Positions 1 through 47,010 of a stretch of 64,000 bases of DNA are shown piece by piece. Both the position numbers and the translations under genes were made by a program. The stretch spans positions 11,408,001 to 11,472,000 of the forward strand of contig OZ059898.1 of the NCBI GenBank assembly GCA_964057225.1, in the 5' to 3' direction. Positions within the stretch are counted from its first letter, which is position 1; each line of letters opens with the position of its first letter. The DNA comes from Auanema rhodensis. Lineage: Eukaryota; Animalia; Nematoda. Below the pieces are notes generated by a model, which was not told the DNA's origin, searched no databases, and saw only the letters and a list, made by a program, of their open reading frames with translations.

Positions 1-3000
1 GAATATACTTTACACTTAAAGTGATAGACGCAATGATTTCGTACTTTTTGGAATAAGATCAAATGGGATCATAAAATTGATTTCTCATGCAAAATATTCG
101 CAGTCAGCAGGATTCGAACCTACGCGGGCAGAGCCCAATTGATTTCTAGTCAATCTCCTTAACCACTCGGACATGACTGCTTGTATAAGGAATATACTTT
201 ACAGTTAAAGTGATAGACGCAATGATCTCGTACTTTTTGGAATAAGATCAAATGGGATCATAAAATTGATTTCTCATGCAAAATATTCGCAGTCAGCAGG
301 ATTCGAACCTACGCGGGCAGAGCCCAATTGATTTCTAGTCAATCTCCTTAACCACTCGGACATGACTGCTTGTAAAAGGAATATACTTTACAGTTAAAGT
401 GATAGACGCAATGATCTCGTACTTTTTGGAATAAGATCAAAAGGGATCATAAAATTGATTTCTCATGCAAAATATTCGCAGTCAGCAGGATTCGAACCTA
501 CGCGGGCAGAGCCCAATTGATTTCTAGTCAATCTCCTTAACCACTCGGACATGACTGCTTGTAAAAGGAATATACTTTACACTTAAAGTGATAGACGCAA
601 TGATTTCGTACATATAGGAATTAGATCAAAAGGGATCATAAAATTGATTTCTCATGCAAAATATTCGCAGTCAGCAGGATTCGAACCTACGCGGGCAGAG
701 CCCAATTGATTTCTAGTCAATCTCCTTAACCACTCGGACATGACTGCTTGTAAAAGGAATATACTTTACACTTAAAGTGATAGACGCAATGATTTCGTAC
801 ATATAGGAATTAGATCAAAAGGGATCATAAAATTGATTTCTCATGCAAAATATTCGCAGTCAGCTAGATTCGAACCTACGCGGGCAGAGCCCAATTGATT
901 TCTAGTCAATCTCCTTAACCACTCGGACATGACTGCTTGTATAAGGAATATACTTTACAGTTAAAGTGATAGACGCAATGATCTCGTACTTTTTGGAATA
1001 AGATCAAATGGGATCATAAAATTGATTTCTCATGCAAAATATTCGCAGTCAGCAGGATTCGAACCTACGCGGGCAGAGCCCAATTGATTTCTAGTCAATC
1101 TCCTTAACCACTCGGACATGACTGCTTGTAAAAGGAATATACTTTACAGTTAATGTGATAGACGCAATGATCTCGTACTTTTTGGAATAAGATCAAAAGG
1201 GATCATAAAATTGATTTCTCATGCAAAATATTCGCAGTCAGCAGGATTCGAACCTACGCGGGCAGAGCCCAATTGATTTCTAGTCAATCTCCTTAACCAC
1301 TCGGACATGACTGCTTGTAAAAGGAATATACTTTACACTTAAAGTGATAGACGCAATGATTTCCTACATATAGGAATTAGATCAGAAAGCATCAAAAAAT
1401 TGATTTCTCATGCAAAATATTCGCAGTCAGCAGGATTCGAACCTACGCGGGCAGAGCCCAATTGATTTCTAGTCAATCTCCTTAACCACTCGGACATGAC
1501 TGCTTGTAAAAGGAATATACTTTACACTTAAAGTGATAGATGCAATGATTTCGTACATATAGGAATTAGATCAGAAAGCATCAAAAAATTGATTTCTCAT
1601 GCAAAATATTCGCAGTCAGCAGGATTCGAACCTACGCGGGCAGAGCCCAATTGATTTCTAGTCAATCTCCTTAACCACTCGGACATGACTGCTTGTAAAA
1701 GGAATATACTTTACAGTTAAAGTGATAGACGCAATGATCTCGTACTTTTTGGAATAAGATCAAAAGGGATCATAAAATTGATTTCTCATGCAAAATATTC
1801 GCAGTCAGCAGGATTCGAACCTACGCGGGCAGAGCCCAATTGATTTCTAGTCAATCTCCTTAACCACTCGGACATGACTGCTTGTAAAAGTAATATACTT
1901 TACAGTTCAAGTGATAGACGCAATGATCTCGTACTTTTTGGAATAAGATCAAATGGGATCAAAAAATTGATTTCTCATGCAAAATATTCGCAGTCAGCAG
2001 GATTCGAACCTACGCGGGCAGAGCCCAATTGATTTCTAGTCAATCTCCTTAACCACTCGGACATGACTGCTTGTATAAGGAATATACTTTACAGTTAAAG
2101 TGATAGACGCAATGATCTCGTACTTTTTGGAATAAGATCAAAAGGGATCATAAAATTGATTTCTCATGCAAAATATTCGCAGTCAGCAGGATTCGAACCT
2201 ACGCGGGCAGAGCCCAATTGATTTCTAGTCAATCTCCTTAACCACTCGGACATGACTGCTTGTAAAAGTAATATACTTTACAGTTCAAGTGATAGACGCA
2301 ATGATCTCGTACTTTTTGGAATAAGATCAAATGGGATCAAAAAATTGATTTCTCATGCAAAATATTCGCAGTCAGCAGGATTCGAACCTACGCGGGCAGA
2401 GCCCAATTGATTTCTAGTCAATCTCCTTAACCACTCGGACATGACTGCTTGTATAAGGAATATACTTTACACTTAAAGTGATAGACGCAATGATTTCGTA
2501 CTTTTTGGAATAAGATCAAATGGGATCATAAAATTGATTTCTCATGCAAAATATTCGCAGTCAGCAGGATTCGAACCTACGCGGGCAGAGCCCAATTGAT
2601 TTCTAGTCAATCTCCTTAACCACTCGGACATGACTGCTTGTATAAGGAATATACTTTACAGTTAAAGTGATAGACGCAATGATCTCGTACTTTTTGGAAT
2701 AAGATCAAATGGGATCATAAAATTGATTTCTCATGCAAAATATTCGCAGTCAGCAGGATTCGAACCTACGCGGGCAGAGCCCAATTGATTTCTAGTCAAT
2801 CTCCTTAACCACTCGGACATGACTGCTTGTAAAAGGAATATACTTTACAGTTAAAGTGATAGACGCAATGATCTCGTACTTTTTGGAATAAGATCAAAAG
2901 GGATCATAAAATTGATTTCTCATGCAAAATATTCGCAGTCAGCAGGATTCGAACCTACGCGGGCAGAGCCCAATTGATTTCTAGTCAATCTCCTTAACCA

Positions 3001-6000
3001 CTCGGACATGACTGCTTGTAAAAGGAATATACTTTACACTTGAAGTGATAGACGCAATGATTTCGTACATATAGGAATTAGATCAAAAGGGATCATAAAA
3101 TTGATTTCTCATGCAAAATATTCGCAGTCAGCAGGATTCGAACCTACGCGGGCAGAGCCCAATTGATTTCTAGTCAATCTCCTTAACCACTCGGACATGA
3201 CTGCTTGTAAAAGGAATATACTTTACACTTAAAGTGATAGACGCAATGATTTCGTACATATAGGAATTAGATCAAAAGGGATCATAAAATTGATTTCTCA
3301 TGCAAAATATTCGCAGTCAGCTAGATTCGAACCTACGCGGGCAGAGCCCAATTGATTTCTAGTCAATCTCCTTAACCACTCGGACATGACTGCTTGTATA
3401 AGGAATATACTTTACAGTTAAAGTGATAGACGCAATGATCTCGTACTTTTTGGAATAAGATCAAATGGGATCATAAAATTGATTTCTCATGCAAAATATT
3501 CGCAGTCAGCAGGATTCGAACCTACGCGGGCAGAGCCCAATTGATTTCTAGTCAATCTCCTTAACCACTCGGACATGACTGCTTGTAAAAGGAATATACT
3601 TTACAGTTAATGTGATAGACGCAATGATCTCGTACTTTTTGGAATAAGATCAAAAGGGATCATAAAATTGATTTCTCATGCAAAATATTCGCAGTCAGCA
3701 GGATTCGAACCTACGCGGGCAGAGCCCAATTGATTTCTAGTCAATCTCCTTAACCACTCGGACATGACTGCTTGTAAAAGGAATATACTTTACACTTAAA
3801 GTGATAGACGCAATGATTTCGTACATATAGGAATTAGATCAGAAAGCATCAAAAAATTGATTTCTCATGCAAAATATTCGCAGTCAGCAGGATTCGAACC
3901 TACGCGGGCAGAGCCCAATTGATTTCTAGTCAATCTCCTTAACCACTCGGACATGACTGCTTGTAAAAGGAATATACTTTACACTTAAAGTGATAGACGC
4001 AATGATTTCGTACATATAGGAATTAGATCAAAAGGGATCATAAAATTGATTTCTCATGCAAAATATTCGCAGTCAGCAGGATTCGAACCTACGCGGGCAG
4101 AGCCCAATTGATTTCTAGTCAATCTCCTTAACCACTCGGACATGACTGCTTGTAAAAGGAATATACTTTACAGTTAAAGTGATAGACGCAATGATCTCGT
4201 ACTTTTTGGAATAAGATCAAAAGGGATCATAAAATTGATTTCTCATGCAAAATATTCGCAGTCAGCAGGATTCGAACCTACGCGGGCAGAGCCCAATTGA
4301 TTTCTAGTCAATCTCCTTAACCACTCGGACATGACTGCTTGTAAAAGGAATATACTTTACAGTTAAAGTGATAGACGCAATGATCTCGTACTTTTTGGAA
4401 TAAGATCAAATGGGATCATAAAATTGATTTCTCATGCAAAATATTCGCTGTCAGCAGGATTCGAACCTACGCGGGCAGAGCCCAATTGATTTCTAGTCAA
4501 TCTCCTTAACCACTCGGACATGACTGCTTGTAAAAGGAATATACTTTACACTTGAAGTGATAGACGCAATGAATTCGTACATATAGGAATTAGATCAAAA
4601 AGCATCAAAAAATTGATTTCTCATGCAAAATATTCGCAGTCAGCAGGATTCGAACCTACGCGGGCAGAGCCCAATTGATTTCTAGTCAATCTCCTTAACC
4701 ACTCGGACATGACTGCTTGTATAAGGAATATACTTTACAGTTAAAGTGATAGACGCAATGATCTCGTACTTTTTGGAATAAGATCAAATGGGATCATAAA
4801 ATTGATTTCTCATGCAAAATATTCGCAGTCAGCAGGATTCGAACCTACGCGGGCAGAGCCCAATTGATTTCTAGTCAATCTCCTTAACCACTCGGACATG
4901 ACTGCTTGTAAAAGGAATATACTTTACACTTAAAGTGATAGACGCAATGATTTCGTACATATAGGAATTAGATCAAAAGGGATCATAAAATTGATTTCTC
5001 ATGCAAAATATTCGCAGTCAGCAGGATTCGAACCTACGCGGGCAGAGCCCAATTGATTTCTAGTCAATCTCCTTAACCACTCGGACATGACTGCTTGTAA
5101 AAGGAATATACTTTACACTTAAAGTGATAGACGCAATGATTTCGTACATATAGGAATTAGATCAGAAAGCATCAAAAAATTGATTTCTCATGCAAAATAT
5201 TCGCAGTCAGCAGGATTCGAACCTACGCGGGCAGAGCCCAATTGATTTCTAGTCAATCTCCTTAACCACTCGGACATGACTGCTTGTAAAAGGAATATAC
5301 TTTACAGTTAAAGTGATGGACGCAATGATCTCGTACTTTTTGGAATAAGATCAAAAGGGATCATAAAATTGATTTCTCATGCAAAATATTCGCAGTCAGC
5401 AGGATTCGAACCTACGCGGGCAGAGCCCAATTGATTTCTAGTCAATCTCCTTAACCACTCGGACATGACTGCTTGTAAAAGGAATATACTTTACAGTTAA
5501 AGTGATAGACGCAATGATCTCGTACTTTTTGGAATAAGATCAAAAGGGATCATAAAATTGATTTCTCATGCAAAATATTCGCAGTCAGCAGGATTCGAAC
5601 CTACGCGGGCAGAGCCCAATTGATTTCTAGTCAATCTCCTTAACCACTCGGACATGACTGCTTGTAAAAGGAATATACTTTACAGTTAAAGTGATAGACG
5701 CAATGATCTCGTACTTTTTGGAATAAGATCAAATGGGATCAAAAAATTGATTTGTCATGCAAAATATTCGCAGTCAGCAGGATTCGAACCTACGCGGGCA
5801 GAGCCCAATTGATTTCTAGTCAATCTCCTTAACCACTCGGACATGACTGCTTGTAGAAGGAATATACTGTAAAGTTAAAGTGATAGACGCAATGATCTCG
5901 TACTTTTTGGAATAAGATCAAATGGGATCAAAAAATTGATTTGTCATGCAAAATATTCGCAGTCAGCAGGATTCGAACCTACGCGGGCAGAGCCCAATTG

Positions 6001-7568
6001 ATTTCTAGTCAATCTCCTTAACCACTCGGACATGACTGCTTGTAGAAGGAATATACTTTACAGTTGAAGTGATAGACGCAATGATTTCGTACATATTTGA
6101 ATTAGATCAAAAAGCATCAAAAAATTGATTTCTCATGCAAAATATTCGCAGTCAGCAGGATTCGAACCTACGCGGGCAGAGCCCAATTGATTTCTAGTCA
6201 ATCTCCTTAACCACTCGGACATGACTGCTTGTAGAAGGAATATACTGTAAAGTTAAAGTGATAGACGCAATGATCTCGTACTTTTTGGAATAAGATCAAA
6301 TGGGATCAAAAAATTGATTTCTCATGCAAAATATTCGCAGTCAGCAGGATTCGAACCTACGCGGGCAGAGCCCAATTGATTTCTAGTCAATCTCCTTAAC
6401 CACTCGGACATGACTGCTTGTAGAAGGAATATACTTTACAGTTAAAGTGATAGACGCAATGATCTCGTACTTTTTGGAATAAGATCAAAAGGGATCAAAA
6501 AATTGATTTCTCATGCAAAATATTCGCAGTCAGCAGGATTCGAACCTACGCGGGCAGAGCCCAATTGATTTCTAGTCAATCTCCTTAACCACTCGGACAT
6601 GACTGCTTGTAGAAGGAATATACTTTACAGTTAAAGTGATAGACGCAATGATCTCGTACTTTTTGGAATAAGATCAAAAGGGATCAAAAAATTGATTTCT
6701 CATGCAAAATATTCGCAGTCAGCAGGATTCGAACCTACGCGGGCAGAGCCCAATTGATTTCTAGTCAATCTCCTTAACCACTCGGACATGACTGCTTGTA
6801 GAATGAATACACTTTACAGTTAAAGTGATTGACGCAATGATCTCGTACTTTTTGGAATAAGATCAAAAGGGATCAAAAAATTGATTTCTCATGCAAAATA
6901 TTCGCAGTCAGCAGGATTCGAACCTACGCGGGCAGAGCCCAATTGATTTCTAGTCAATCTCCTTAACCACTCGGGCATGACTGCTTGTAGAAGGAATATA
7001 CTTTACAGTTAAAGTGATAGACGCAATGATCTCGTACTTTTTGGAATAAGATCAAAAGGGATCAAAAAATTGATTTCTCATGCAAAATATTCGCAGTCAG
7101 CAGGATTCGAACCTACGCGGGCAGAGCCCAATTGATTTCTAGTCAATCTCCTTAACCACTCGGACATGACTGCTTGTAGAAGGAATATACTTTACAGTTA
7201 AAGTGATAGACGCAATGATCTCGTACTTTTTGGAATAAGATCAAAAGGGATCAAAAAATTGATTTCTGATGCAAAATATTCGCAGTCAGCAGGATTCGAA
7301 CCTATGCGGGCAGAGCCCAATTGATTTCTAGTCAATCTCCTTAACCACTCGGACATGACTGCTTGTAAAAGGAATATACTTTACAGTTAATGTGATAGAC
7401 GCAATGATCTCGTACTTTTTGGAATAAGATCAAAAGGGATCATAAAATTGATTTCTCATGCAAAATATTCGCAGTCAGCAGGATTCGAACCTACGCGGGC
7501 AGAGCCCAATTGATTTCTAGTCAATCTCCTTAACCACTCGGACATGACTGCTTGTAAAAGGAATATAC
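1..7568 (-). tRNA. Tandem array of tRNA-Ser(AGA) genes, segment 1: 40 copies, 189-bp unit; array runs off the left edge
   Basis: Minus-strand unit contains the 82-nt GCAGTCATGTCCGAGTGGTTAAGGAGATTGACTAGAAATCAATTGGGCTCTGCCCGCGTAGGTTCGAATCCTGCTGACTGCG, with a long variable arm and AGA anticodon. Copies start at 99, 288, 477 and so on; the last ends at 7551. A TTTT Pol III terminator lies about 5 nt downstream. Confidence 0.97.
99..180 (-). tRNA. tRNA-Ser(AGA), first complete copy, shown as representative
   Basis: Cloverleaf with acceptor GCAGTCA/TGACTGC, A box TGTCCGAGTGG, B box GGTTCGAATCC and anticodon loop CTAGAAA. Confidence 0.97.
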
Positions 7569-7934
7569 CGTTCCATTCGGAGACTCTATATATGTAACTG
7601 CAGGGTTAGAGCCAGACCGACTAGAGGAATGAGGAATGGCACCGCCTACCCTCATGCCCCTATTCGGGAGTTCGCCCCTTTGCAAGCCCATGGACGGTTT
7701 GCATCTAACTTAGTTAATCTTATATATTAGTCTTTGTCTTGTAAATGTAGTTTACTTTATACTTGTGTTATTGGATTGTAATGATATTGTATTGTGTATA
7801 ATAAACCTATATATTTCCTTATCTTATGTAATCCTTATGCTCTGTTTCCATACCGCTACACTTATGGAATACTATACGCGTAGTTGAGCAGACTACAATG
7901 GTCTGTTCAATATACGTAGGAGCATAATGGAACG
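7569..7934 (+). repeat. 5' LTR of element 1
   Basis: Begins CGTTCCATT and ends AATGGAACG (9-bp inverted termini). AATAAA near 7800. About 8 substitutions versus the 3' LTR by eye. Confidence 0.97.
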
Positions 7935-7955
7935 TGGAGGTTCCACCTCGAACTC
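7935..7955 (+). promoter_or_regulatory. Primer binding site complementary to the tRNA-Gln 3' end
   Basis: TGGAGGTTCCACC is the reverse complement of GGTGGAACCTCCA (tRNA-Gln 3' end, recalled sequence). It is followed by TCGAACTC, complementary to the T-loop region. Confidence 0.85.
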
Positions 7956-8196
7956 ATTTTTGTCGCAAAAACTCGCATAAAAAGTCCATATTTTGATATC
8001 TAAATTAAAACTTCCTCCACGGTTAGCAACATAATGAGGGCGCCAACTTGTATAAGGTGCAGGTACAAGGGATCTCTCTTTTAGAGAGCTAGGACTATAT
8101 AATTTTGAAATTTCACCCGCTGTCCCCACTCATAAAACCGTCTGAGTGTCCACCCTTATAATACCGTATCCTGCACCGCTTCTCTTGCATTTTTTT

Positions 8197-8546
8197 TGAG
8201 GACGTTTGGATCGAAATAGGGGACAATTTCACCAAACGAAATTTTGATTACATTATTATTTGGCAACGAGGAGTTAGAATGAAATTTTGAAAGCGCACAA
8301 AGTTTAATATTTTATTGTGGTCAGGACTAGAGATTTGAAAGTTAAATTCAGGCGTAAAAGAGCATGCTAACTAAATATTTTTGCGGGAGCCGTTATTCGG
8401 TTTTTATTTTTTTTTTTTTGATTGTGAGAATAGACCACACTAGTCCGAAAAATCCTGGCACAAATTTTATTGCCTGTCAGGTCATTTTGGCGAAAGCACA
8501 TGGGCCACGGATGTTTTCTTCTCCGTAGAATGTGTCACCTTCCTCA
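8197..8546 (+). ncRNA. Conserved structured cis-RNA in the 5' leader with a pseudoknot; function unknown
   Basis: TGAGGA/TCCTCA closing stem. Interleaved stems GTGGTC/GACCAC and GGACTAG/CTAGTCC. Homologues with compensatory changes at 29224-29678 (+) and 45829-46214 (-). Confidence 0.65.
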
Positions 8547-8922
8547 GCTCATTTTTGTTGCTAACATCATAAGATATTCCCACACACCTACCGTAGTCTT
8601 CATATTGTAATATTCTATAAATTAGTAAAATGGTTTAAAGAAAAAAAAAAAATTGCGTTTTATAAACGAGCTTTGGTCTCAGTCCATTAGTAAAATGAGC
8701 AATCTTTTTAAATATTCTCGGAATCTCATTAGCATGCCAAAATCATTCCGGAAAAGAATCGCCCACGGCTTTTAATAATCAACGTGCACATGAGCCATTT
8801 TCCCAAGGCGCACGCACTCCTTCTTTATTAATAAGCTCGACCAAAGTTTGTGTTATGGAAAAAAAAAAAGAGAGAGAGAACAAATGAGTGAAATTAAGTA
8901 TTTATTATATATAAAACAATTG

Positions 8923-9523
8923 TTAAAAGCCCCATTTAAAATGCAACTGTCTCACAAATTCTATAGGCTGTGAGATGGGCTCATTGCTAGGCTCTAAATA
9001 CTGCGAATACTCTGAATCCGCAGAGGTCCTTAGCAATAAGCCCATAGGAGACTGTTCATAAAACAAATAAATTTTAAACAAAATTTTAGACATATAATCA
9101 TAAAAATCATGAGGCTTATGCTCATACCAATTCCAAGGGGATGCGATTAAATTGGGGTTTCCATACCAATGCGCGCACAAATCGGTGAGGCACCATCGCC
9201 CAATAGCTGCAACCTCATCCGCTATTTCTTGCATTAGGGAGAAATTCACTAATCCCCTCCCCAGATAATGCATTTTTAAATCCTCGATAAACTAAAATTT
9301 TTTTTTTATTATTAATATAACATGTTTCTTTGCTTTAACCAACCATCTTAATCATGTCTGGGTGAGGCCTATAAGCTAACACTTCGTCTTGATCATACAA
9401 GACGAGGTCAGCGTACAGCTTTCTCAAGACAAAAGTCATTCCCGATAGACCTTCATAAGCCATTCTTTGATTATTTTTTTTTCTTTCTTCTTCAGCTCTA
9501 CAAATATAAAGAATCTTATGCAT
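8923..9523 (-). CDS. Putative two-exon antisense accessory gene of element 1 (~182 aa, unknown function)
   Basis: Exon 9523-9344, 52-nt intron GTTGGT...TTTTAG (9343-9292), then exon 9291-8923 joining in frame (..MIKM|FIEDLKMHYL..). AATAAA about 17 nt after the stop. TTTTCAG acceptor just upstream of the ATG. Confidence 0.6.
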
Positions 9524-9883
9524 AAAAAGGGGACATAAAACGACTGAAAATCTCTCTCATATTTTCAAGAATTCAATTAGAGTAAAGTATTAAGATTGAG
9601 GCTGGAAAGAGCGAAGACCAACAAAATTTATAATTGATGAACATCTGTGAAAAAGAATAAAGAAAAGAGAATACGGTAGATAGGCGGAGCCAGATCTCAG
9701 GCCAAGATTTTAAAACTCTTTCTCATCTAATAACGATTCTCGGCGAAAGACGCCACGTCTCAATCTTCAAACTTTTCTTACTTTTCCCTATAACCGACCT
9801 GAATTTCTTGTCACTCATTCAACGTCAACATCCCCCATATAACGAAACACTCGCGGTTTTTCCAAACCAAGAGTGATTCCAAA

Positions 9884-11710
9884 GTGGCACGAAGATACTC
9901 TTCGGCCGTCCCTGCTCTATACCCTTCTGAGTCCAGTGACGACATCGCAGTCGCCAGTCGAACCAGAAGCCGCACTCGACTCCTCAGTGTTCAGATTGAA
10001 GAGCCTGAACAAGAGGTAAAACCCAAAGTCGAGAAAACCTTCATTCCTCGAGAAGGCACGTATTCACCTCCGGACAACACCGAGGAGGACCCTGATTTCT
10101 ATATTCAGGACTACAATATTCAAACTTCAGCTTCAACTCCAAAGGTACACTCTTTTAAAAGTAATAAAAAGATTCAAAAAATTCAAAAACCAAAACAAAT
10201 AACCTCTAATACTTCACCAGCCACTCCCCACCTAAACTTATCAACTTTATCAGTTAATACTGATAACGATCTTGCATCTTCTTTTGAACTAACTCTAACA
10301 CCGCAGGCATTTTCCACTCCGATAGAAAACTCACAACTTAATAAAACCTCATCTCTCACTATTCGCAAATCACCCTTATCAGTTATCACTGATAAGCTTG
10401 ATTCGAAAAAGCTTGATTCTAAAAAAATTAATAAAAGAAAAACTAATACACCGCGTAGGCGCTCAACCTCTAATAATCCCGTAGAACCAAATCAGGAAAT
10501 TACCGAAGTTTTGCCCTTATCACTAACTACTGATAAGTTCAAAAGTAAGAAATCTTTAACAGCTCGCTTAATAAAAGTTTTGAATTTGTCTCCAGGGGAG
10601 GTAACAACAGAACAAGTTGATAACTCTCTTCACGTATCCTCCAACCCGACCCTTAATAAGTCAGATAGCGCTATACCCAGCTCAAGCGTATCAATACATT
10701 CGACGCCTCAGGCAACGAGTCGAATTATCAAACTCCCAGGGAAGCGGTTCTCCTCAGCCGCCCCTACCATTAGTTATCCAACATCTGGTAACTCGAAAAA
10801 GGGAGGTAAGAATTTAACGGCGAGAAGCTCAGGCAGTAAAGGGATTACGTCATCTCGCACATACCCTGAGGATATACCAACCATGACGGAGACACCACGT
10901 CTTCCGGGAGCTGGTAAATCTACCATTGCGCACGCATTAAGCTCACCTTATTGCCCCATATACGACGGAAGTCGTAACTTTAGAGATTTCGTGGCAAAGT
11001 TTAATACCTTTTCTAACGCCTTAGGCTTAGTGATGCCCGAAAGACTAACTATTTTACCATTACTATTGAAAAATGATAGAGCAGAGGAAGCTTATTTAGA
11101 GCTACCTGACAAGGTCAGAACAGCTGGACCTTGGGTTACCCTAATAGAAGAGTTAACATCCAAGCTGTGTCCCGAATACAATCAAGACCCTGCCCTTATC
11201 ACACTTCAAAACAGCACTCAAGGCGATTTATCAATTGATGGTTTTGCACAAACGTTAAGAAACCTCAGCTTAAATGCTTTCTCTAATAGTGATACTCATA
11301 AAGATCACATTCTGAGGTCCACATTTTTGAGAGGCTTGAAAAATACGATACGCCCAGGGGTAATTCGAGCAAAACCCAAAACTTTTGCTGAGGCTGTTGA
11401 TAGTGCTCGCTGGGAGGAATCAATTGCAAACCAAGTAGCAGACCCTCAGGCGCTATTGGTTAACGCAATTGAAAGAACTTTCCCCCCGCGCAGAAACAAT
11501 GGTGGGAGAGGTATGGCAAGAGGTTATCAATCTTTTAATAATAAAAATTATCAAAATTATAATAATTATAACAATTATCATCCAAACTTTCAAAACAATC
11601 AAAATTATCATAAATTTTCAAAAAATCAAAAAGGCTGGAATTTCCAAAACCCATTTGCTAGGAACCGCAATTTTGGTGACCGCGGTCGAAATTATCAGAA
11701 TCAAAATTAA
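9884..11710 (+). CDS. gag: Gag with long S/T/K-rich N-terminal extension, capsid-like domain and N/Q/Y/RG-rich C-terminus; no CCHC knuckle
   Basis: Retrotransposon CA motifs PIYDGSRNFRDF..F, Q-G-x-S-I..F...L..L...AF and FLRGL..IR..V....PKTF.EAV..A..EE. Frame open from about 9803; first ATG only at 10883. Confidence 0.9.
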   Translation: MARRYSSAVPALYPSESSDDIAVASRTRSRTRLLSVQIEEPEQEVKPKVEKTFIPREGTYSPPDNTEEDPDFYIQDYNIQTSASTPKVHSFKSNKKIQKIQKPKQITSNTSPATPHLNLSTLSVNTDNDLASSFELTLTPQAFSTPIENSQLNKTSSLTIRKSPLSVITDKLDSKKLDSKKINKRKTNTPRRRSTSNNPVEPNQEITEVLPLSLTTDKFKSKKSLTARLIKVLNLSPGEVTTEQVDNSLHVSSNPTLNKSDSAIPSSSVSIHSTPQATSRIIKLPGKRFSSAAPTISYPTSGNSKKGGKNLTARSSGSKGITSSRTYPEDIPTMTETPRLPGAGKSTIAHALSSPYCPIYDGSRNFRDFVAKFNTFSNALGLVMPERLTILPLLLKNDRAEEAYLELPDKVRTAGPWVTLIEELTSKLCPEYNQDPALITLQNSTQGDLSIDGFAQTLRNLSLNAFSNSDTHKDHILRSTFLRGLKNTIRPGVIRAKPKTFAEAVDSARWEESIANQVADPQALLVNAIERTFPPRRNNGGRGMARGYQSFNNKNYQNYNNYNNYHPNFQNNQNYHKFSKNQKGWNFQNPFARNRNFGDRGRNYQNQN

Positions 11711-11752
11711 AATGGGTATCAAAGAAGCCATAATGCATCACAAAATCAAGAA

Positions 11753-14700
11753 ATGAGCAATAATAGACAGAGAAATAACAGTACCTTTAGGGGAAATAAC
11801 AACAATAGAGGCAGAGGTAGAGGCTCAAGAGTCAATAATTTGACTCTGATATCTCCTTTGACTTTAGCCGTAGCTTTATCAGTAATCTTATCACTGGTTA
11901 CAACAGCTGAAGCATACCAGCTATGTACTAAAGCTACTGGAGGAGCCCTTCTCCGTCCCCCATCTCTCCGAAAATGCTTATTACCACCAATAAAGCATAT
12001 CTTACGAACAAAAGTTCATCTTTATACAAGGAATCAAACGGCACATGAATGGGATGCATGGAGATGCTCCAAAGAAATTCATAAAATGTGTATCAGAGAC
12101 CTTTTGTTCCTTAGAGATACCAATACAACGATAGCGAGAATTGAAAAGATACCAGCTGCAGAATGCAGACTGGCAGTGAGAGATAGAAGATGGAATTGGA
12201 GTGAATTAAAGAAGATCGACAGCATAACATATGCAACTGACGAGCCTTCCTTCTCGCCAGGCCGATCTTTTAATAATGAACTATGTGAAGAGAAAGCCAG
12301 ATTGGTTATCGAAAGAGGGGTTATGACACGGATGCCAGATGAAACTATAATCTCCAATTTAATACTAAATACTGAAGGATGCTTAGCGCATCATGGAGAA
12401 TGTGCATCAGATACCTCAATCATCATATGGGAGAAACAGCCTTATGAATATCGATGCATCTATATCGACATGAGTGAATATGATGCGATAATTGGAAACG
12501 GCATTATTCTGTTACCAACCACTCAATCAGCCCTTGTAATCGATCAAAAAGAGATACCGAAGCAAATATCTTCTTGTTTTAAACAGCCAATCTTCCACAC
12601 CACAACTGGCAATTACATTCTCTTACCACAGTACCCAAATGACACCAATATCCATGTTTTAATAGAGAGAGAATATAAGAAACTTCCGGCGAAAAGAGAT
12701 AAAAGAGCAATTGCGGAATGCACGGTTGAATTAAACAAGGAGTGGATACAAAAACAGGAAGATTTTGAAACTTTAATATTAAATATTTGTCCTTATCCTT
12801 TCTTACGACCGGTGATGAGTAATCCTGGTATTTATCAGATAATACCGCTTATAAAGGCCAGACGAGCTGTCAACCCTTCATATTCAATTATTGATTGGGT
12901 TTCAGCACATCCCGAGAAGTTTTATTTCTTCTTAAGAAGTCCCGTATCTGATAAATCCATACAACGTTTCCTTCAAACATACGAAATACACGACCCTGAG
13001 GAAGCAATACTTTATTTTCTTGCGCAAAAGGAACTGGCAGCAACCACTCGCGGCGCTATACGGTATTTAACCTCAAAACAATTATTAGAACAGATAGGTG
13101 ACAGATTAACAGCACACGAATTTGACGAAAAACTACTAGAAAAGGACGGATCCTACCGCGAAAGAGCCGAAAGCATAGCGATGGAGCTAGCTTATACACC
13201 GGTAATATTTGAAAACAATCTGTCGGTACCATCAAGGCAAGAGGTTTTAAAATCCTTTGTGAACATGCCGCCTATCCGACCAACTTTAACAACTGACAAT
13301 GCTGATGAGCGTATAGTACTTAGAAATACACTTTACTTATACCATAACTTGATGACATTGCGAGTAATAAGGCCAAATAAAACAGCAGCAGCCGTAGATG
13401 ATGAAAAGTTCCGACAATTAACAATCAATGTGCCAGATACCAACAAACTATATCGAGATAAAGATTCGAACTACGGTATATCGATAGGCCCCCACCCTCG
13501 CATTCAAACTCCAAGCGCGGATACACGCCAGCTACTTATAAAAACATTTTTACCACTGTTAGAGGATATTGAAACACCGCCTTATCTGACTAGAAGACTG
13601 TCATTAACGACAACAACGGACAAACCCGCTTCACTAGTTCAGGAGACAACTATAAGCTATACGACTCGGATTCCGACGACAACCATAGTTGACACGACAA
13701 CAGCCGTGATAACTACGACTCTCTCGCCAACAACATTAGCAACAGTCACTGACACGGCGTCACGAACCTTAAGGAAACAAAGAACATCATCTCCACCCGT
13801 AGAAACCAGAGAAATTCAGGCTCAGGCAACGTATACAGCGTCAAAAGTGAACAACGAAATACAATTCAACCTCAACGTATCTCGCAGAATAGCTCAAGAT
13901 CATCTACAATATACAACAACACTCATACAAGAAGAGCTACAGAAACATTTTATGGAATCTTATGAATCCATATGTGAGATTCAAAATAGATACCTCGAGC
14001 TATGGCGTTCTATTTCACACATAGAACCCACAATAGCAATGAGGACTATTTTAGGAAGAGAGGATATTGCAGCCCGTTTCGTAGGCAGCGATATAGTTCA
14101 TGTTCATATATGCTTACCTCTTCAACCTAAAGCTGTTTATCATAATCATAAGATCAATGATACATGCTATTTGGAAACACCAGTAATAACAGAAGATGAG
14201 AGATTATATTTTGCTGCTCCAGGATCAAGAGACTTATTAACACATGGAAAAGAGATAGATTGCGAACATGTACCAACAGATGTGTACTATCAAAATGGAG
14301 AATGGATAAATATAAATGGATCGGTTGAAGTAAAACCAATATCACTCTTTGATAAAGCGCAATACCACCAATTAACACCTTTAAAGTTCACAGGCGCTAA
14401 CTTATACACCAATTTATCATTGAGAGTTTACTCAATGTCAACAGCTATTGCATATGGAGCAAGTTTAGCATCCATACGACAGAACCATGTTTTACATACT
14501 ATTCACAACGATCCAAAGATTACGTCAGCCTTTAATCTTTTGAAAAAGGGCAGTGACTATATCTCTAAAGCAGCTGAGTTCACAACTTCCGCCTGGACTA
14601 GCGTAAAACATTTTCTAATAGGTTCAATTGAGAGAACACTCATCTTTATAGGATCAATAGTCACGATTGCCGCAGTATTAATAATTCTTTTCGTTGTTGT

Positions 14701-15676
14701 TAAATTTTGGTTCTTCAGAGCCACTCCACTAACCGTAATGCATGTCCGTGAAATAGATAATGAGCCCCCAGGCTATGAAGAAACATTGGAACTTGTAAGC
14801 CGCCCAGACCAACAGATGCCAGATAACATCATGAAGCAATACTATCCTGCGTTAGTAACATTTATTCCAATCGCAATACCATTTGTTGCTTCTATTGCAT
14901 CAGCGGAAACAAAGTTACCATTAATATATATATCAGTTGAAGATAAACTGATTTTAGCTTTATGGGATTCAGGCTCATCAGTGTCATATGTTAGGCTCTC
15001 CACCCTCAAATATCTGAACATGGCCGAAAATGTCAAGAAGAGACATTTAGTAGCGATGGCAGCCAACAAGTCCACTTTCACATTTTATGGAAAGATAAAT
15101 CTTGTAATTGAAATTGCCGGCTACGAGATCGAACACACCTTTTTGGTCTCAAACGATCATGACTGTCCTGCTCCCGCTTTAATTGGACTAGATTTCATGA
15201 AAGCGCTTGACAGCGAAAACATCGACGTCAGCCTTAAACCATCCAAGAAGAGGTTGGAGATTGGAAACAATGCCATCCCATTAATAGGAAACGAATCTAT
15301 TAAGCATACGGAGATAACTGTGAATATCATTAATTTAAGAACAAAAACATTAAAGCCTGATGAAGAGGCACCTATCCCAATAAAGACAGATAAACCACTA
15401 GAATCTAACGAAGTGGTTGTCTTAGGGGATAGTGGAAGCGCATTAAAATCATTATATCCAACTGCGTTTCGTGATACCAGTGGAGTATATGTTATGTTCC
15501 GTAACGATACCGATGAAACAATAGCTATGGAAGCTAATTCAGTCATCGGACAGGCAATAATTGGAGAAATTCCGGCTTGTGAACCCTTTAAACATAAGCC
15601 AATTCTACCATATGTTCCGCCAGAAGCCGATTGGGAGAGTAAACTACCATATTTTCCAAGAGACTTCATATCTTGA
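11753..15676 (+). CDS. env: Envelope glycoprotein (class III, gB/chuvirus-like) fused in frame to an aspartic protease; same frame as gag, separated by one TAA
   Basis: Signal peptide ending TAEA|YQLC (11915). Cys-rich ectodomain with N-glycosylation sequons, furin-like RDKR (12695-12706) and RKQR, and a Thr-rich mucin stretch. gB-like block ICEIQN..LW..I..IEP...LGR.DIAARF.G.D...V..C...CY...PV. TM at about 14636-14715, PPGY tail, then protease ALWDSGS (14966) and LIGLDF. Confidence 0.88.
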   Translation: MSNNRQRNNSTFRGNNNNRGRGRGSRVNNLTLISPLTLAVALSVILSLVTTAEAYQLCTKATGGALLRPPSLRKCLLPPIKHILRTKVHLYTRNQTAHEWDAWRCSKEIHKMCIRDLLFLRDTNTTIARIEKIPAAECRLAVRDRRWNWSELKKIDSITYATDEPSFSPGRSFNNELCEEKARLVIERGVMTRMPDETIISNLILNTEGCLAHHGECASDTSIIIWEKQPYEYRCIYIDMSEYDAIIGNGIILLPTTQSALVIDQKEIPKQISSCFKQPIFHTTTGNYILLPQYPNDTNIHVLIEREYKKLPAKRDKRAIAECTVELNKEWIQKQEDFETLILNICPYPFLRPVMSNPGIYQIIPLIKARRAVNPSYSIIDWVSAHPEKFYFFLRSPVSDKSIQRFLQTYEIHDPEEAILYFLAQKELAATTRGAIRYLTSKQLLEQIGDRLTAHEFDEKLLEKDGSYRERAESIAMELAYTPVIFENNLSVPSRQEVLKSFVNMPPIRPTLTTDNADERIVLRNTLYLYHNLMTLRVIRPNKTAAAVDDEKFRQLTINVPDTNKLYRDKDSNYGISIGPHPRIQTPSADTRQLLIKTFLPLLEDIETPPYLTRRLSLTTTTDKPASLVQETTISYTTRIPTTTIVDTTTAVITTTLSPTTLATVTDTASRTLRKQRTSSPPVETREIQAQATYTASKVNNEIQFNLNVSRRIAQDHLQYTTTLIQEELQKHFMESYESICEIQNRYLELWRSISHIEPTIAMRTILGREDIAARFVGSDIVHVHICLPLQPKAVYHNHKINDTCYLETPVITEDERLYFAAPGSRDLLTHGKEIDCEHVPTDVYYQNGEWININGSVEVKPISLFDKAQYHQLTPLKFTGANLYTNLSLRVYSMSTAIAYGASLASIRQNHVLHTIHNDPKITSAFNLLKKGSDYISKAAEFTTSAWTSVKHFLIGSIERTLIFIGSIVTIAAVLIILFVVVKFWFFRATPLTVMHVREIDNEPPGYEETLELVSRPDQQMPDNIMKQYYPALVTFIPIAIPFVASIASAETKLPLIYISVEDKLILALWDSGSSVSYVRLSTLKYLNMAENVKKRHLVAMAANKSTFTFYGKINLVIEIAGYEIEHTFLVSNDHDCPAPALIGLDFMKALDSENIDVSLKPSKKRLEIGNNAIPLIGNESIKHTEITVNIINLRTKTLKPDEEAPIPIKTDKPLESNEVVVLGDSGSALKSLYPTAFRDTSGVYVMFRNDTDETIAMEANSVIGQAIIGEIPACEPFKHKPILPYVPPEADWESKLPYFPRDFIS

Positions 15677-18584
15677 TCTAGAGAATGCTGATCTCACGAA
15701 AGAAGAAAAACATGAGCTTACAAAAATAATTGAAAGCCACCGTGAGGCATTTCTTAACGAGGACAGGAAAATAGGCTTATTTAAAGGTCCTATAGAGCAT
15801 ACCATACCATTGAGAACAGATATGGATATGCCAAAGCCGAGAATAACACGTATTCCCTTAGGAAAACAGGAAGAAATTGAAAAACAAGTCAAAGAAATGC
15901 TTGAGCAAGGCATAATAGAGCCTTCTACATCTCTATTTAATAGCCCTGTAGTACTAGTTAAGAAGAAAGATGACACGTATAGGTTTGTGACAGATTTTCG
16001 AGCTTTAAATAATGTCACACGCAAGCAAACTTATGTCATTCCAAGCATTTCTGACATAGTTGATTTGGCAGCAGGCGCCCAATTTTTCTCAAACTTCGAT
16101 TTAGTGTCAGGATTTTTTCAAATATCCTTGAGAAAATCAGATCGACCACTAACAGCATTTACGACCACATCCGGCACATACCAGTACAAACGGATGCCGA
16201 TGGGCCTTTGTGGAGCCCCTCATACCTTTCAAACAGCAGTAAGGTATTTGCAAAGTAAATGTTCTTGTAAACTATTTGTTTATTTGGACGATCTATTAGT
16301 TATATCTGATACAAGAGAACAACATCTCAAAGATATCGATGATTTACTGCAAGCAGTAGAAGAATTGGGAATGAAGATAAAGCTTAAGAAATGCGCTTTT
16401 GCTCAACCAGAAGTGAAATTTCTAGGACTTATTGTAGGACGTCAAGGTATAAAACCTGACCCTCAAAAAGTCGCCGCCATACAAGATTATCCGGCACCAA
16501 AGAATGCAACAGGTGTACGAGCATTCTTGGGAATGGTTGGATTCTTTCGCAAATTCATGAAAGATTTTGCACGTATCGCAAGCCCTTTATACGATCTGAC
16601 AAAGGCAGATACTGAATTCAAATGGGAAAACAAACATAAAGAAGCTTTAGACCTCCTTAAAAGAAGTTTAATACAGGCACCCGTTTTAAGCCCACCCAAA
16701 TCGGACCGCTTGTTTATAGTTGAAAGCGACGGTAGTAACATCGCCATAGGTGCTGTATTATTACAACCGGAAGATCCAAAACAACCTCTGAAAAATCTAC
16801 ACCCTATCGCATTTGCAAGCAGAAAACTAGTTAAAGCCGAACGTAACTACGCACCAATCGAGATAGAAGCATTAGGCCTTGTATATGCATTAAATCAATT
16901 CCGTACATACATTCTTGGAACTCATACTATATGTATTACGGACCATCGACCCCTTACCAGCTTAATGACACGCAGAGACTTATTTGGTCGTCTTGCGAAG
17001 TTCCAGCTGGTCATCCAAGAATATGATATTGAAATAAAATATCGCGCAGGCCAATTAAATAAAGTATGCGATGCTCTATCTCGATATATAGGTGAAGAAG
17101 CTAACGATGCTAAGCCGGAAACAAAGAAGAAGAAAATAGAAGAAATTCACATTAACGCCATAAATACACCAACAATAAAGGAAATTCAACTAAACACCCC
17201 TTGGATTAAACGGACGATAGCGGAGATTGAATATAGAGCACAAAAGAACATGACAGCTAATGACAGATATTGTGTCATAAATGACTTGCTCTATACAAAA
17301 CCAACAGACAAAAAGCCACAACCCGCTATCGTAATACCACAAGAACACCCCATAATTGAGGAAATAATCAAAGTTTTTCATGAGGATCCTACAATTGCAG
17401 CACATCAAGGAATTATTAAAACAAAAGAAGCAATTCTAAGAAGATTCTATTGGACAAATATGCAGAACGACATTACTAAATTCATCAAGAACTGCATTAA
17501 ATGTGCTCAAAGAAAAAAAGATCCACATTCCATGACGGTACAACCAATAGGTCATTTTGAGATACCAAGCAAGCCATTTGAACGAGTCCACATGGACGTA
17601 ATGGGACCATTTCCCCCTTCAAAAAGAAACTGTACCTACGTCATTACCATGCAAGACGCATTTACAAAATGGTCAACAACAATTGCTGTACCACAAATAA
17701 CAACGGAAATCACAATTGACCGATTTTTAAGACATTTCGTTTACATTTTTGGACCACCACATCGCTTGATCACCGATAGAGGTTCGAACTTTGTATCCAA
17801 AAAGTTCGAAGAAATGTGTACTAAACTTGGAATCAAACATGAACCAACACTACCACACCAAAAGAACTCAAATGGACAAGTGGAAAGACTTCACAGAACC
17901 CTCGAAGAAGGATTAACCCACTACTTAAAAGAGGACCTTAGTGACTGGGATACTGTATTACCAAAAATCACTTTTGCTATAAACAATATTCAGCACGCGA
18001 CTACAGGGATTGCGCCATACATTGCATTATTTGGTAAAGAATGCAGAATGTCAATGGACGCTGAATTACCAGAAACGATCACCAAAATTCAAGAAATTTC
18101 TGAAGAATTACTCCAAAGAAGACCAGATATGGACAAGAGAGACGAAATAATAAAGAACCGCATAGCTAAAAATCAAGAAAATGCGAAAAAGAAGAAGGAT
18201 AGAACGCAAAGAGCACACCATAGAGACATTCGACCGGGCGACATGGTGATGACGACCATAAAATCACACCAAATCGGCCAAAAGCTTCGGAAAAGCTATG
18301 ATGGACCATACGAAGTCATCAACGTAGAAGGATCAAAAGTTCAAATCAGAAATTCATCAGGAAAACTACAAGATATCCACAAAGATAACTTGAAAATCTT
18401 CTCTCCTGCTTCACAAAACATCTCTTACAACACTCGCGCAAGGTTTCGAGAAAGTCAAGCAGAAGAAGATAGCGACATCGAAATAATAGAAGTGATCAAC
18501 AGGAACAACAAGGATAGCATAGATACAGAGCCAGAAGATGAAAATGAAGACGAAATATGGCTTCCGAGGAATGAAGAAGAATAA
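15561..18584 (+). CDS. pol: Pol: reverse transcriptase, RNase H and integrase; +1 frame relative to env-PR, true join near 15650-15665
   Basis: RT motifs SPVVLVKK, DFRALN, DLVSGFFQI, MPMGL and YLDD (16281). RH motifs ESDGS..AIGAVL, EIEAL and TDHRPL. IN HHCC (H..HQG..C..C), D-D(35)E (HMDV, ITDRG, VERLHRT) and GPY motif. No chromodomain; acidic tail. Confidence 0.97.
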   Translation: MEKFRLVNPLNISQFYHMFRQKPIGRVNYHIFQETSYLDLENADLTKEEKHELTKIIESHREAFLNEDRKIGLFKGPIEHTIPLRTDMDMPKPRITRIPLGKQEEIEKQVKEMLEQGIIEPSTSLFNSPVVLVKKKDDTYRFVTDFRALNNVTRKQTYVIPSISDIVDLAAGAQFFSNFDLVSGFFQISLRKSDRPLTAFTTTSGTYQYKRMPMGLCGAPHTFQTAVRYLQSKCSCKLFVYLDDLLVISDTREQHLKDIDDLLQAVEELGMKIKLKKCAFAQPEVKFLGLIVGRQGIKPDPQKVAAIQDYPAPKNATGVRAFLGMVGFFRKFMKDFARIASPLYDLTKADTEFKWENKHKEALDLLKRSLIQAPVLSPPKSDRLFIVESDGSNIAIGAVLLQPEDPKQPLKNLHPIAFASRKLVKAERNYAPIEIEALGLVYALNQFRTYILGTHTICITDHRPLTSLMTRRDLFGRLAKFQLVIQEYDIEIKYRAGQLNKVCDALSRYIGEEANDAKPETKKKKIEEIHINAINTPTIKEIQLNTPWIKRTIAEIEYRAQKNMTANDRYCVINDLLYTKPTDKKPQPAIVIPQEHPIIEEIIKVFHEDPTIAAHQGIIKTKEAILRRFYWTNMQNDITKFIKNCIKCAQRKKDPHSMTVQPIGHFEIPSKPFERVHMDVMGPFPPSKRNCTYVITMQDAFTKWSTTIAVPQITTEITIDRFLRHFVYIFGPPHRLITDRGSNFVSKKFEEMCTKLGIKHEPTLPHQKNSNGQVERLHRTLEEGLTHYLKEDLSDWDTVLPKITFAINNIQHATTGIAPYIALFGKECRMSMDAELPETITKIQEISEELLQRRPDMDKRDEIIKNRIAKNQENAKKKKDRTQRAHHRDIRPGDMVMTTIKSHQIGQKLRKSYDGPYEVINVEGSKVQIRNSSGKLQDIHKDNLKIFSPASQNISYNTRARFRESQAEEDSDIEIIEVINRNNKDSIDTEPEDENEDEIWLPRNEEE

Positions 18585-19283
18585 CAACAAGATAATGCTA
18601 CGTTATTTAAATTATTGTAACAAAATAACGATGAATTAGAAAAAAAAAAATTAATGTTAAATAACATTCAAAATAAAAATAGCATTTAATAGAGATTGAG
18701 AAAGGAAAAATAAGGCAAATTCTAAACGAGGAGATGTTATGACTAATGGTTCCAAGTTACCGTAATCCTATGCGGACTAGAGGACATTTTGACAACCATC
18801 CGAGCTCCATGTGCCTCTCCAAATAAGATGAGATAAACACTGGTAGGCGTATCAACCACAATTTCATCTTAAGTGGTAGTCTCCATTAGTAATCAAGGAT
18901 TCACTCTGGGAGACATATGGAGACACATTATTAAATCATAATCTCGGTTCAATTTAGAAATGAGTACTTCTTGAGACCATTAGTCAAAATAATAACATAT
19001 TCCCATTCATTACTAGCCCCTTATTCTACAATCTCTATTAGGAAATGCTTGAATATTAAGATAATTAATTTATGAAATTAATAATATTCTAATTCATCGT
19101 CACTTCATATTATATCGAACCCTTCTTATAAATTATTGTAATTTTGTTTTTATACTAATTAAAACTCTATCATACTATAGTTATTGTGAAGCTAAAACAA
19201 TTGAACTCTAAAACTCAGTTACATATAAGCCCAAATTTTTGTTTAAAATATCGCGAGGTCGCGACAATCTTTGAAAAAGGGCA

Positions 19284-19649
19284 CGTTCCATTCGGAGACT
19301 CTATATATGTAACTGCAGGGTTAGAGCCAGACCGACTAGAGGAATGTGGAATGGCACCGCCTTCCCTCATGCCCCTATTCGGGAGTTCGCCCCTTTGCAA
19401 GCCCATGGACGGTTTGCATCTAACTTAGTTAATCTTATATATTAGTCTTTGTCTTGTAAGTATAGTTTACTTTATCCTTGTGTTATTGTATTGTAATGAT
19501 ATTGTATTGAGTGTAATAAACCTATATATTTCCTTATCTTATGTAATCCTTATGCTCTGTTTCCATACCGCTACACTTATGGAATACTATACGCGTAGTT
19601 GAGCAGACTACAATGGTCTGTTCAATATACGTAGGAGCATAATGGAACG
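19284..19649 (+). repeat. 3' LTR of element 1
   Basis: 366-bp direct repeat of 7569-7934, preceded by the PPT and a TCGCG-AGGT-CGCGA hairpin. Confidence 0.97.
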
Positions 19650-19653
19650 ATAC

Positions 19654-31500: not shown

Positions 31501-31854
31501 ACTCGAAAAAAATGGCACGTTCCATTCGGAAATCAATACGTAGCAGGCGGGTTAGAATCAGACGACATGAGGCTGAGAGAGGACGACACGCCCTTCATAT
31601 GGAACACAGACTTCAGCTTTGCCTCATGGAATGACTATGGATGGTTGGTCTTCCTTTCTTAGCTCTCTTTCACTTTATATCTTTATGTAGACTTATATAA
31701 CTTATTGTAATCATGTAGACATAATAAACCTTTCTTTCTCGAGTCTTATGTTTATCCATTATGCTCTTTATCTACCGCTACATCTGGAATACTATCACAC
31801 TCATCTTGTAGGCTTTATTGGTCTATAGGATCGACGTGAGAGCATAACGGAACG
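28563..31854 (+). mobile_element. Non-autonomous internally deleted LTR element (element 2, 3,292 bp) of a related but distinct subfamily
   Basis: 337-bp LTRs at 28563-28899 and 31518-31854, identical by eye. CG...CG ends, TSD CAAT and the same Gln PBS. Internal region keeps the leader, the Gag N-terminal peptide and the integrase tail only. Confidence 0.95.
30250..30820 (+). pseudogene. Gag N-terminal extension remnant joined at about 30579 to an integrase C-terminal remnant
   Basis: IPHVTKHSRFFQTKSATKV...PRAGTYSP matches element 1 IPHITKHSRFFQTKSDSKV...PREGTYSP. GKIQDIHKDNLK...DSDIEII.VIN..TEPED...WLP matches the element 1 IN tail. Confidence 0.9.
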
Positions 31855-43800: not shown

Positions 43801-43810
43801 CAAAAATTTG
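31855..43810 (-). tRNA. tRNA-Ser(AGA) array segment 3: 63 copies, a few with damaging variants
   Basis: First gene at 31923-32004, last ends at 43722; 189-bp period. Confidence 0.96.
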
Positions 43811-46800: not shown

Positions 46801-46817
46801 GGAGTCTGAATGGAACC
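43811..46817 (-). mobile_element. Non-autonomous LTR element (element 3, ~3.0 kb), third subfamily, older
   Basis: LTRs at 46474-46817 (5') and 43811-44155 (3') with multiple mismatches. PBS (A)GGAGGTTCCACCTCGAACTC, PPT GAAAAAGGGCA, TSD ATTG/TTTG. Gag N-terminal remnant at about 44830-45135 (HSRFFQTKS..PREGTYSP) with an internal stop. Confidence 0.93.
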
Positions 46818-46840
46818 ATTGATTTCTCATGCAAAATATT

Positions 46841-46922
46841 CGCAGTCAACAGGATTCGCACCTACACGGGCAGAACCCAATTGATTTCTAGTCAATCTCC
46901 TTAACCACTCGGACATGACTGC
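46841..46922 (-). pseudogene. Degenerate tRNA-Ser copy between element 3 and the solo LTR
   Basis: B-box and variable-arm mutations (GGATTCGCACCTACACGGGCAGAACCC), shared with the copy at 43641-43722. Confidence 0.85.
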
Positions 46923-47010
46923 TTGTAGAAAGAATATACTTTACAGTTAAAGTGATAGACGCAATGATCTCGTACTTATTGGAATTAGATCAAAAGGGAT
47001 CAAAAAATTG

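Follow-up and report, generated by a model that had tools for sequence, protein, structure and literature searches.

An RNA structure with crossing stems in the 5′ leaders of three LTR retroelements, possibly a packaging or dimerization signal

A conserved, covarying RNA structure lies in the 5′ leader of an LTR retroelement, downstream of its primer-binding site (PBS), and recurs in two short, non-autonomous derivatives within the same 64,000-nucleotide stretch of DNA (the whole stretch analyzed, hereafter the window). Such a structure had been proposed in an earlier note on this DNA, and our analysis bears the proposal out. The domain is very probably an RNA structure that is under selection and acts in cis. 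As to its role, we favor a packaging or dimerization signal. This assignment is tentative, is made by analogy with known leader elements, and carries a probability of roughly 0.45 in our estimate.

The three elements (E1, E2, and E3; Table 1) have LTRs with the termini CGTTCC...GGAACG, and a 19-nt PBS of the TGG type follows each 5′ LTR directly. The two LTRs of E1 (366 bp; 7569-7934 and 19284-19649) are 97.8% identical, and those of E2 (337 bp) are 100% identical. The PBS of E3 (46473-46455, minus strand) starts with AGG rather than TGG, which would fit the view that E3 is older than the other two copies. An AATAAA motif is present in every LTR (7800-7805 in E1), at a distance of about 130 nt from the LTR end. 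This motif is likely the polyadenylation signal and would mark the R/U5 boundary, so that only a few hundred nucleotides would separate the domain from the start of the transcript. No further copies of the element or of the leader domain were found within the window.

Judged by its genes, E1 is a GAG-ENV-POL endogenous retrovirus of the Ty3/gypsy type with a gB-type ENV, which is an already known type. It has LTRs, a tRNA-type PBS, the order gag, gB-like env, and PR-RT-RH-IN, and a Ty3/gypsy POL. ORF1 gave weak matches to Ty3_capsid and Retrotrans_gag, both under the curated cutoffs. Its tail is basic and rich in Arg, Gly, and Asn, with no CCHC knuckle, and its N-terminal half has no family match. 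The N-terminal open stretch of about 360 codons (9803-10920) has no in-frame AUG and is conserved at the protein level with E3. Translation of Gag may depend on splicing or trans-splicing or may begin at a non-AUG codon, or else the E1 copy may have decayed. The glycoprotein-like segment of ORF2 matches PF24664 (3e-15), and ORF3 encodes reverse transcriptase, RNase H, and integrase. The small ORFs of E2 and other ORFs searched in the window have no Pfam match. The closest relatives of the E1 POL are all from rhabditid nematodes (50-62% identity), and the glycoprotein domain recurs in several of them. By these protein similarities, the element family probably belongs to a rhabditid nematode. 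A gB-type ENV placed before POL has been published for non-canonical nematode endogenous retroviruses (Sacco et al. 2022, as cited in the available text of PMC13524379). E1 shares with these both the gene order and the class III fusion-glycoprotein-like segment; what is new is the RNA domain in its leader.

Table 1. Positions of arrays, elements, reading frames, and parts of the leader domain in the window.
Feature	Position	Strand	Remarks
tRNA-Ser array	1-7568, 19650-28562, 31852-43810, 46818-47010	minus	Rfam tRNA
tRNA-Gly array	47880-48733, 54188-56527	minus	Rfam tRNA
Element 1 (E1)	7569-19649	plus	12.1-kb LTR retroelement; target duplication ATAC
Element 2 (E2)	28563-31854	plus	3.3-kb non-autonomous derivative; target duplication CAAT
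Element 3 (E3)	43811-46816	minus	3.0-kb non-autonomous derivative; LTR identity about 96.5%
PBS	7935-7953 (E1)	plus	Same sequence in E1 and E2; first base different in E3
Hairpin Hu	8074-8088	plus	Upstream leader; same position in the three copies, different stems
PK1, 5′ strand	8122-8127 (E1), 46286-46281 (E3), 29134-29139 (E2)		GUCCCC (E1), GUCCUC (E3), GUUCAC (E2)
PK1, 3′ strand	8219-8224 (E1)		GGGGAC (E1), GAGGAC (E3), GUGAAC (E2)
Domain as bounded in the earlier note	8197-8546 (E1)	plus	Closed by H0
Domain copy in E2	29224-29678	plus	Homologous motifs
Domain copy in E3	45829-46214	minus	Homologous motifs
H0	8197-8202 with 8541-8546	plus	UGAGGA with UCCUCA; invariant closing stem
Hairpin H1	8204-8237	plus	H1a and H1b, 8-nt apical loop
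H1a	8204-8209 with 8232-8237	plus	Two double changes, one break in E2
H1b	8213-8217 with 8226-8230	plus	One double change
Hairpin Hg	8282-8305	plus	GCGC palindrome (8293-8296) in apical loop
Strands A and B	8317-8330	plus	A GTGGTC 8317-8322, B GGACTAG 8324-8330; 1 nt between
CGGGA block, then hairpin Hc	8384-8405	plus	CGGGA invariant; Hc stem different in each copy
Strands A′ and B′, then GAAAAA	8433-8452	plus	A′ GACCAC 8433-8438, B′ CTAGTCC 8440-8446, 1 nt between; GAAAAA 8447-8452 invariant, unpaired
Strands A and B in E2	29405-29410, 29412-29418	plus	GCGATC, GGACTAT
Strands A′ and B′ in E2	29549-29554, 29556-29562	plus	GATCGC, ATAGTCC
H5 and blocks	8454-8491	plus	CCUG 8454-8457 with CAGG 8478-8481, around a variable insert
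H7	8496-8501 with 8530-8535	plus	GCAYAW with WURUGU; two double changes, invariant G-U closing pair
Hairpin H8	8507-8526	plus	Enclosed by H7
ORF1	9884-11710	plus	gag-like
ORF2	11753-15676	plus	Class III (gB/Monjiviricetes-type) fusion-glycoprotein-like segment, then aspartyl protease, in one reading frame

The earlier note had assigned four complementary strands and a set of short motifs to these leaders, and every one of them was found in its place in all three elements. Read on the minus strand, E3 carries A, B, A′, and B′ in the form seen in E1. The motifs TGAGGA/TCCTCA, GAAAT/ATTTC, CGGGA, GAAAAA.CCTG...CAGGTC, and TTGGC-N4-GCA each occur once per element and are absent elsewhere in the window, and the same holds for the 14-nt block TGTCACCTTCCTCA. 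The spacers diverge freely, as had been claimed; the lengths between anchors in E1, E3, and E2 are 114, 139, and 175 nt, 102, 97, and 130 nt, and 94, 111, and 110 nt. Hairpins Hu, Hg, Hc, and H8 occupy equivalent positions across the copies and are built from unrelated stems. Those of Hu are CUCUCU/AGAGAG in E1, AUCUCGC/GCGAGAU in E3, and CUCC/GGAG in E2. In Hg, the apical loop presents GCGC in E1 and E2, and E3 has GCGCGC in a weak AU hairpin. Following H5 are the invariant CAGGUC and UUGGC (8487-8491), each of which has more than one conserved candidate partner. One of the two double changes in H7 sets E1 apart and the other sets E3 apart.

The alignment consists of three natural copies, which amount to effectively two independent contrasts, and E1 and E3 are identical in strands A and B. 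We listed every stack of paired alignment columns in which each of the three copies has canonical pairs; crossing stacks were counted as well. The domain contains six such stacks of at least 5 bp, compared with 0.5 expected in column shuffles, and these carry six both-sided changes, compared with 0.22 expected; neither value was reached in any of 400 shuffles. A structure-guided table of seven helices, some of them picked after inspection, comprises 40 pair positions, of which 31 are invariant, eight are doubly compensated, none is changed on one side, and one is broken. When the 3′ partner was slid by 1-3 nt, the fraction of canonical cells dropped from 99.2% to 28-45%. The whole leader, counted from the PBS, contains 28 conserved stacks (1.7 expected in column shuffles), and three of its helices have at least two double changes (0.15 expected; 0 of 150 shuffles). 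RNAalifold recovers A/A′, H0, H1, H5, and H7.

The folding energy of the single sequences, compared with shuffles, is barely better than chance for E1 (z = −0.54) and E2 (z = −0.72), and z is −2.46 for E3. These weak scores, the small sample, and the helices chosen after inspection would fit a reading in which the blocks had no RNA function and were conserved as DNA-level regulatory sites or by chance, with fortuitous complementarity. We consider this very unlikely, as the changes compensate exactly in eight of the nine pair positions that vary, no shuffle or slid register came up to the observed values, and one contact (PK1, described below) has three different Watson–Crick pairs at a single position. 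Coding was rejected as an explanation. The domain contains no ORF common to the three copies and the differences in spacer length are not multiples of three, so the conservation is not that of a protein. An origin as a nested insertion or a captured small-RNA gene was also rejected, as the domain has the same relative position in the three elements and no Rfam match.

Strands A and A′ pair as GUGGUC/GACCAC in E1 and E3 and as GCGAUC/GAUCGC in E2, a difference of two double changes. Strands B and B′ pair as GGACUAG/CUAGUCC in E1 and E3 and as GGACUAU/AUAGUCC in E2, with six invariant pairs and one changed terminal pair. The three compensatory pair changes that had been reported for E2 are thus present, two in A and one at the end of B, with zero mismatches. 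The two stems are supported in different ways. Stem A is supported by covariation. Stem B is supported by thermodynamics, by its invariance, by the single terminal double change, and by its placement beside A/A′. The ensemble probability of B/B′ is 0.95 in E2 and E3, where it is part of the minimum-energy fold, and 0.23 in E1. The chance of a complementary 7-mer at the position of B is about 1e-3, a rough estimate from base composition. A/A′ is improbable in an energy model that allows nested pairs only, and forcing it costs 0.5-4.5 kcal mol−1. The A and B stems compete in this model; RNAalifold, which weighs covariation, picks A/A′.

Stems A and B cross, thus giving the topology of a pseudoknot. 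The pseudoknot reading of the earlier note stands to the extent that the strand order A-B...A′-B′ crosses and each stem is separately supported; the classical coaxial form of it does not. With ideal A-form geometry, a coaxial H-type arrangement would require one nucleotide to bridge approximately 26 Å, whereas side-by-side packing leaves an axial mismatch of approximately 6 Å per connector, both values coming from a crude check. As the connectors on both sides are 1 nt long, the classical coaxial knot is geometrically excluded at this level of modeling. The two stems may instead pack side by side or, equally possibly, alternate. One could speculate that the motif is a compact, non-coaxial 'double-crossover' pseudoknot, a form uncatalogued for retroelement leaders, and that together with PK1 and the PBS-complementary ends of the domain it would form a switch that couples primer exposure, dimerization, and packaging. 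We regard this as a long shot.

Alignment of the whole leader revealed a further contact, PK1, in which the apical loop of H1 (GAAAU/AUUUC) pairs with a strand upstream of H0. Across E1, E3, and E2 one position of PK1 is occupied by three different Watson–Crick pairs. PK1 crosses both H0 and H1 and is therefore a second contact of the pseudoknot type. It is better supported than B/B′. In addition, at either end of the domain lies an invariant block complementary to one half of the PBS. Block 8195-8201 can pair with 7946-7952 and block 8537-8542 with 7936-7941, in competition with H0. Owing to PK1 and the PBS complements, which extend toward the PBS, the structured region is larger than 8197-8546, and the boundaries originally drawn were too narrow. 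In E1 the structured domain reaches from the vicinity of the PBS to 8546, and several of its invariant blocks have competing partners.

The complementarity to the PBS raises the question of whether the domain controls the initiation of reverse transcription, presenting or sequestering the PBS or holding the primer tRNA while switching between conformations. The competition of both PBS halves with H0 would suit such a role, as would the alternative partners available to A and B′ and the possible alternation of the A and B stems. However, the PBS pairings are all invariant and so carry no covariation evidence, and motifs of the GAGG/CCUC type cross-pair easily. We found no complementarity between the PBS and the local tRNA-Ser and tRNA-Gly, and the local tRNAs are not the primer. 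Control of priming seems rather unlikely to us.

The two short elements are informative about the role of the domain. What both retain is the LTRs, the PBS, the leader, the 3′ end, and a stretch of several hundred bases at the start of ORF1. Internal deletions have removed env entirely, pol almost entirely, and the greater part of gag. Compared with E1, each carries a single large internal deletion, and a segment of its leader has been replaced. The domain is retained in both of them, as had been claimed. The identity of the E2 LTRs indicates recent movement, and hence cis signals that worked recently. Retention of the domain in two non-autonomous copies, one of them with identical LTRs, favors a packaging or dimerization signal. 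The location also fits the psi-like class, with the domain (about 8122-8546) lying between the PBS (7935-7953) and ORF1 (from 9884). The domain thus combines a position between PBS and gag, retention in copies that depend on proteins supplied in trans, and a structure backed by covariation among three sequences. A Gag with a basic tail of the RNA-binding type, encoded by ORF1, would be a suitable partner, and the 5′ pseudoknot domain of Ty1 provides a precedent (abstract of PMC5454406). Several points weigh against a packaging role. Retention in non-autonomous copies fits roles in export or reverse transcription equally well, and the GCGC loop is convincing in only two of the three copies. The comparison covers three sequences, B/B′ has a single terminal covarying pair, and the folding energies of E1 and E2 are weak. 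Several invariant blocks have competing partners, and the coaxial form of the knot is excluded.

If the domain is a packaging or dimerization signal, it would act in cis on the full-length transcript in the manner of psi/DIS. Gag, supplied in trans for the short elements, would select the genomic RNA through the domain and would probably dimerize it. The unpaired invariant blocks GAAAAA, CGGGA, and CACCU would then be candidate protein contacts, and the GCGC loop a candidate kissing site. The crossing stems A and B, together with PK1, might lock this fold or switch it.

Export is the strongest of the competing roles, though still an unlikely one. Here the domain would help the unspliced genomic RNA to leave the nucleus or to override its retention there, as a site similar to an RRE or CTE that is bound by a host export factor or by a Rev-like protein encoded by the element. 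The RNA of non-autonomous copies also needs to be exported, and the retention of the domain in E2 and E3 fits this role as well. Export of the unspliced genomic RNA of Cer1, a nematode Ty3/gypsy element, requires its own protein CERV, and the available text of PMC10309623 describes no RNA target of CERV. The domain shares with Cer1 export and with RRE/CTE the type of structured cis element, and with Cer1 also the nematode host and the Ty3/gypsy affiliation. Unlike Cer1, E1 falls in the env-carrying GAG-ENV-POL group, and no CERV homologue or CERV-like protein was identified in E1. Neither was an internally repeated protein-binding motif of the CTE type seen, and a location beside the PBS is commoner among packaging and dimerization signals.

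The E1 leader is 1.95 kb long and contains 23 upstream AUGs, and ORF1 has no in-frame AUG nearby. The long leader with its AUGs suggests RNA processing, which would favor export. Cap-dependent scanning also looks inadequate given these AUGs and the missing ORF1 start, and an IRES, as suggested in the earlier note, or another form of translational control for Gag could be envisaged. However, the domain ends approximately 1.3 kb upstream of the ORF1 frame and not directly before an initiation codon, it is still carried by copies that have lost gag, env, and pol, and no IRES family of Rfam matches it even at E<=5. We consider a role in translation improbable.

A ribozyme had also been offered as an explanation, and a self-cleaving one could be of the HDV-like type. 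HDV-like ribozymes are nested double pseudoknots of P1, P1.1, P2, P3, and P4, in which J4/2, placed between the 3′ strands of P1 and P2, carries the catalytic cytosine. They also have the strand order A-B...A′-B′, and some retroelements carry them at the 5′ end (PMC3185411). In the leader domain, however, A′ and B′ are 1 nt apart, too close to accommodate P4 and J4/2 with its catalytic cytosine, and about 100 nt separate B from A′. No ribozyme family of Rfam matched the domain by covariance model, at either the gathering or the permissive threshold. Moreover, cleavage within the leader would split the PBS from the genome. The ribozyme option is extremely unlikely.

The description of the RNA as undescribed is upheld by a comparison with Rfam 15, in which only tRNAs pass the gathering threshold in the window. 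With permissive filters, the best matches of the E1 and E2 leaders have E-values of at least 0.66 and reach 12-16 bits, compared with gathering thresholds of 65-100, and different families are hit in each copy. In the literature, we found no leader, UTR, or packaging RNA described for env-carrying elements of nematodes. An eLife 2026 survey covers ORFs, LTRs, and PBS only, and its text contains neither 'UTR' nor 'packaging'. The domain is a cis-acting structured leader of an LTR retroelement, which is a known kind of feature, and our literature search found none described in the env-carrying nematode lineage.

Among known systems, the domain can be compared with the 5′ pseudoknot domain of Ty1 from Saccharomyces, which according to the abstract of PMC5454406 is needed for helper-mediated propagation of mini-elements, for dimerization, and for packaging. 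As far as the accessible parts of PMC5454406 and PMC6844567 describe it, the Ty1 TIPIRT domain is likewise a cis-acting 5′ domain of about 300 nt in the RNA of an LTR retroelement. Its stems, as given there, are 7 and 8 bp long (6 and 7 bp here), and both pseudoknots have a 1-nt connector and hairpins nested in loops. In Ty1, two of the nested hairpins carry complementary apical motifs and kiss. The connector layout is different. In the accessible description, the Ty1 pseudoknot has a 1-nt loop between S1 and S2 and two long loops, whereas the present motif has 1-nt connectors both between A and B and between A′ and B′, and a single long loop. Set against the abstract, the A/B motif is thus not a pseudoknot of the Ty1 TIPIRT type. 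Furthermore, Ty1 is a Ty1/copia element whose domain overlaps gag coding sequence, whereas E1 is Ty3/gypsy and has a long non-coding leader. Similarity in sequence between the two domains would not be expected.

Retroviral psi/DIS regions, such as that of MMTV with its purine loop plus PBS (PMC8096270), share with the domain the position between PBS and gag, invariant unpaired purine-rich blocks beside helices, and, as far as E1 and E2 go, a palindrome in a hairpin loop (GCGC). A possible interplay with the PBS is a further likeness. In contrast to retroviral leaders, there is no Rfam homology, and the basic, Arg/Gly/Asn-rich tail of the E1 Gag has no zinc knuckles.

The cataloguing of env-carrying Ty3/gypsy elements in nematodes is recent and was based on their proteins. 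The leader domain offers a concrete RNA for the packaging or export step of these elements. It also provides a marker of sequence and structure for non-coding, trans-dependent relatives that protein searches miss. Its unusual pseudoknot layout can be compared with those of Ty1 and retroviruses. As a feature of a kind expected for LTR retroelements, the domain refines existing knowledge and does not overturn it.

A second block is common to both short elements. It spans about 9690-10100 in E1, about 30120-30500 in E2, and about 45230-44850 (minus strand) in E3, and contains a 19-nt invariant run and a GGUUU-UUCC-AAACC hairpin at the nominal start of ORF1. This block may act in cis as an element in its own right, or it may be a continuation of the leader domain.

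The 'satellites' of the window consist of tRNA genes that look intact and are arrayed in tandem on the minus strand. Around 150 genes for tRNA-Ser(AGA) are repeated with a period of 189 bp, and the three LTR elements interrupt this array. It is followed by 15 genes for tRNA-Gly(UCC) with a period of 179 bp. The Rfam tRNA score is 57.8 bits for most of the Ser copies and 68.2 bits for most of the Gly copies. From the insertion sites (7565-7568, 28559-28562, and 43810/43811), the distance to the 5′ end of the nearest tRNA is about 17, 43, and 88 nt, and the elements occur in both orientations. These differing distances do not agree with targeting of tRNA genes at a fixed distance as by Ty3, which was rejected. 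Targeting of Pol III genes by these elements is possible, and our literature search found no description of tRNA-array targeting in nematodes.

Beside E3 there is an extra LTR copy (47011-47354), which follows one tRNA-Ser repeat unit. The LTR plus its flank is duplicated at approximately 97% identity (46474-47435 and 43618-44155), which looks like the result of unequal recombination between LTRs or repeat units. The two tRNA-Gly blocks are separated by an AT-rich stretch (49288-53971; approximately 25% GC), in which a 149-aa ORF is without a Pfam match. This stretch contains a 115-bp tandem duplication and direct repeats approximately 2.8-3.1 kb apart, one pair of which (49488-49787 and 52310-52609) is 98% identical and two others 90-91%. 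It may be another repeat-bounded insertion.
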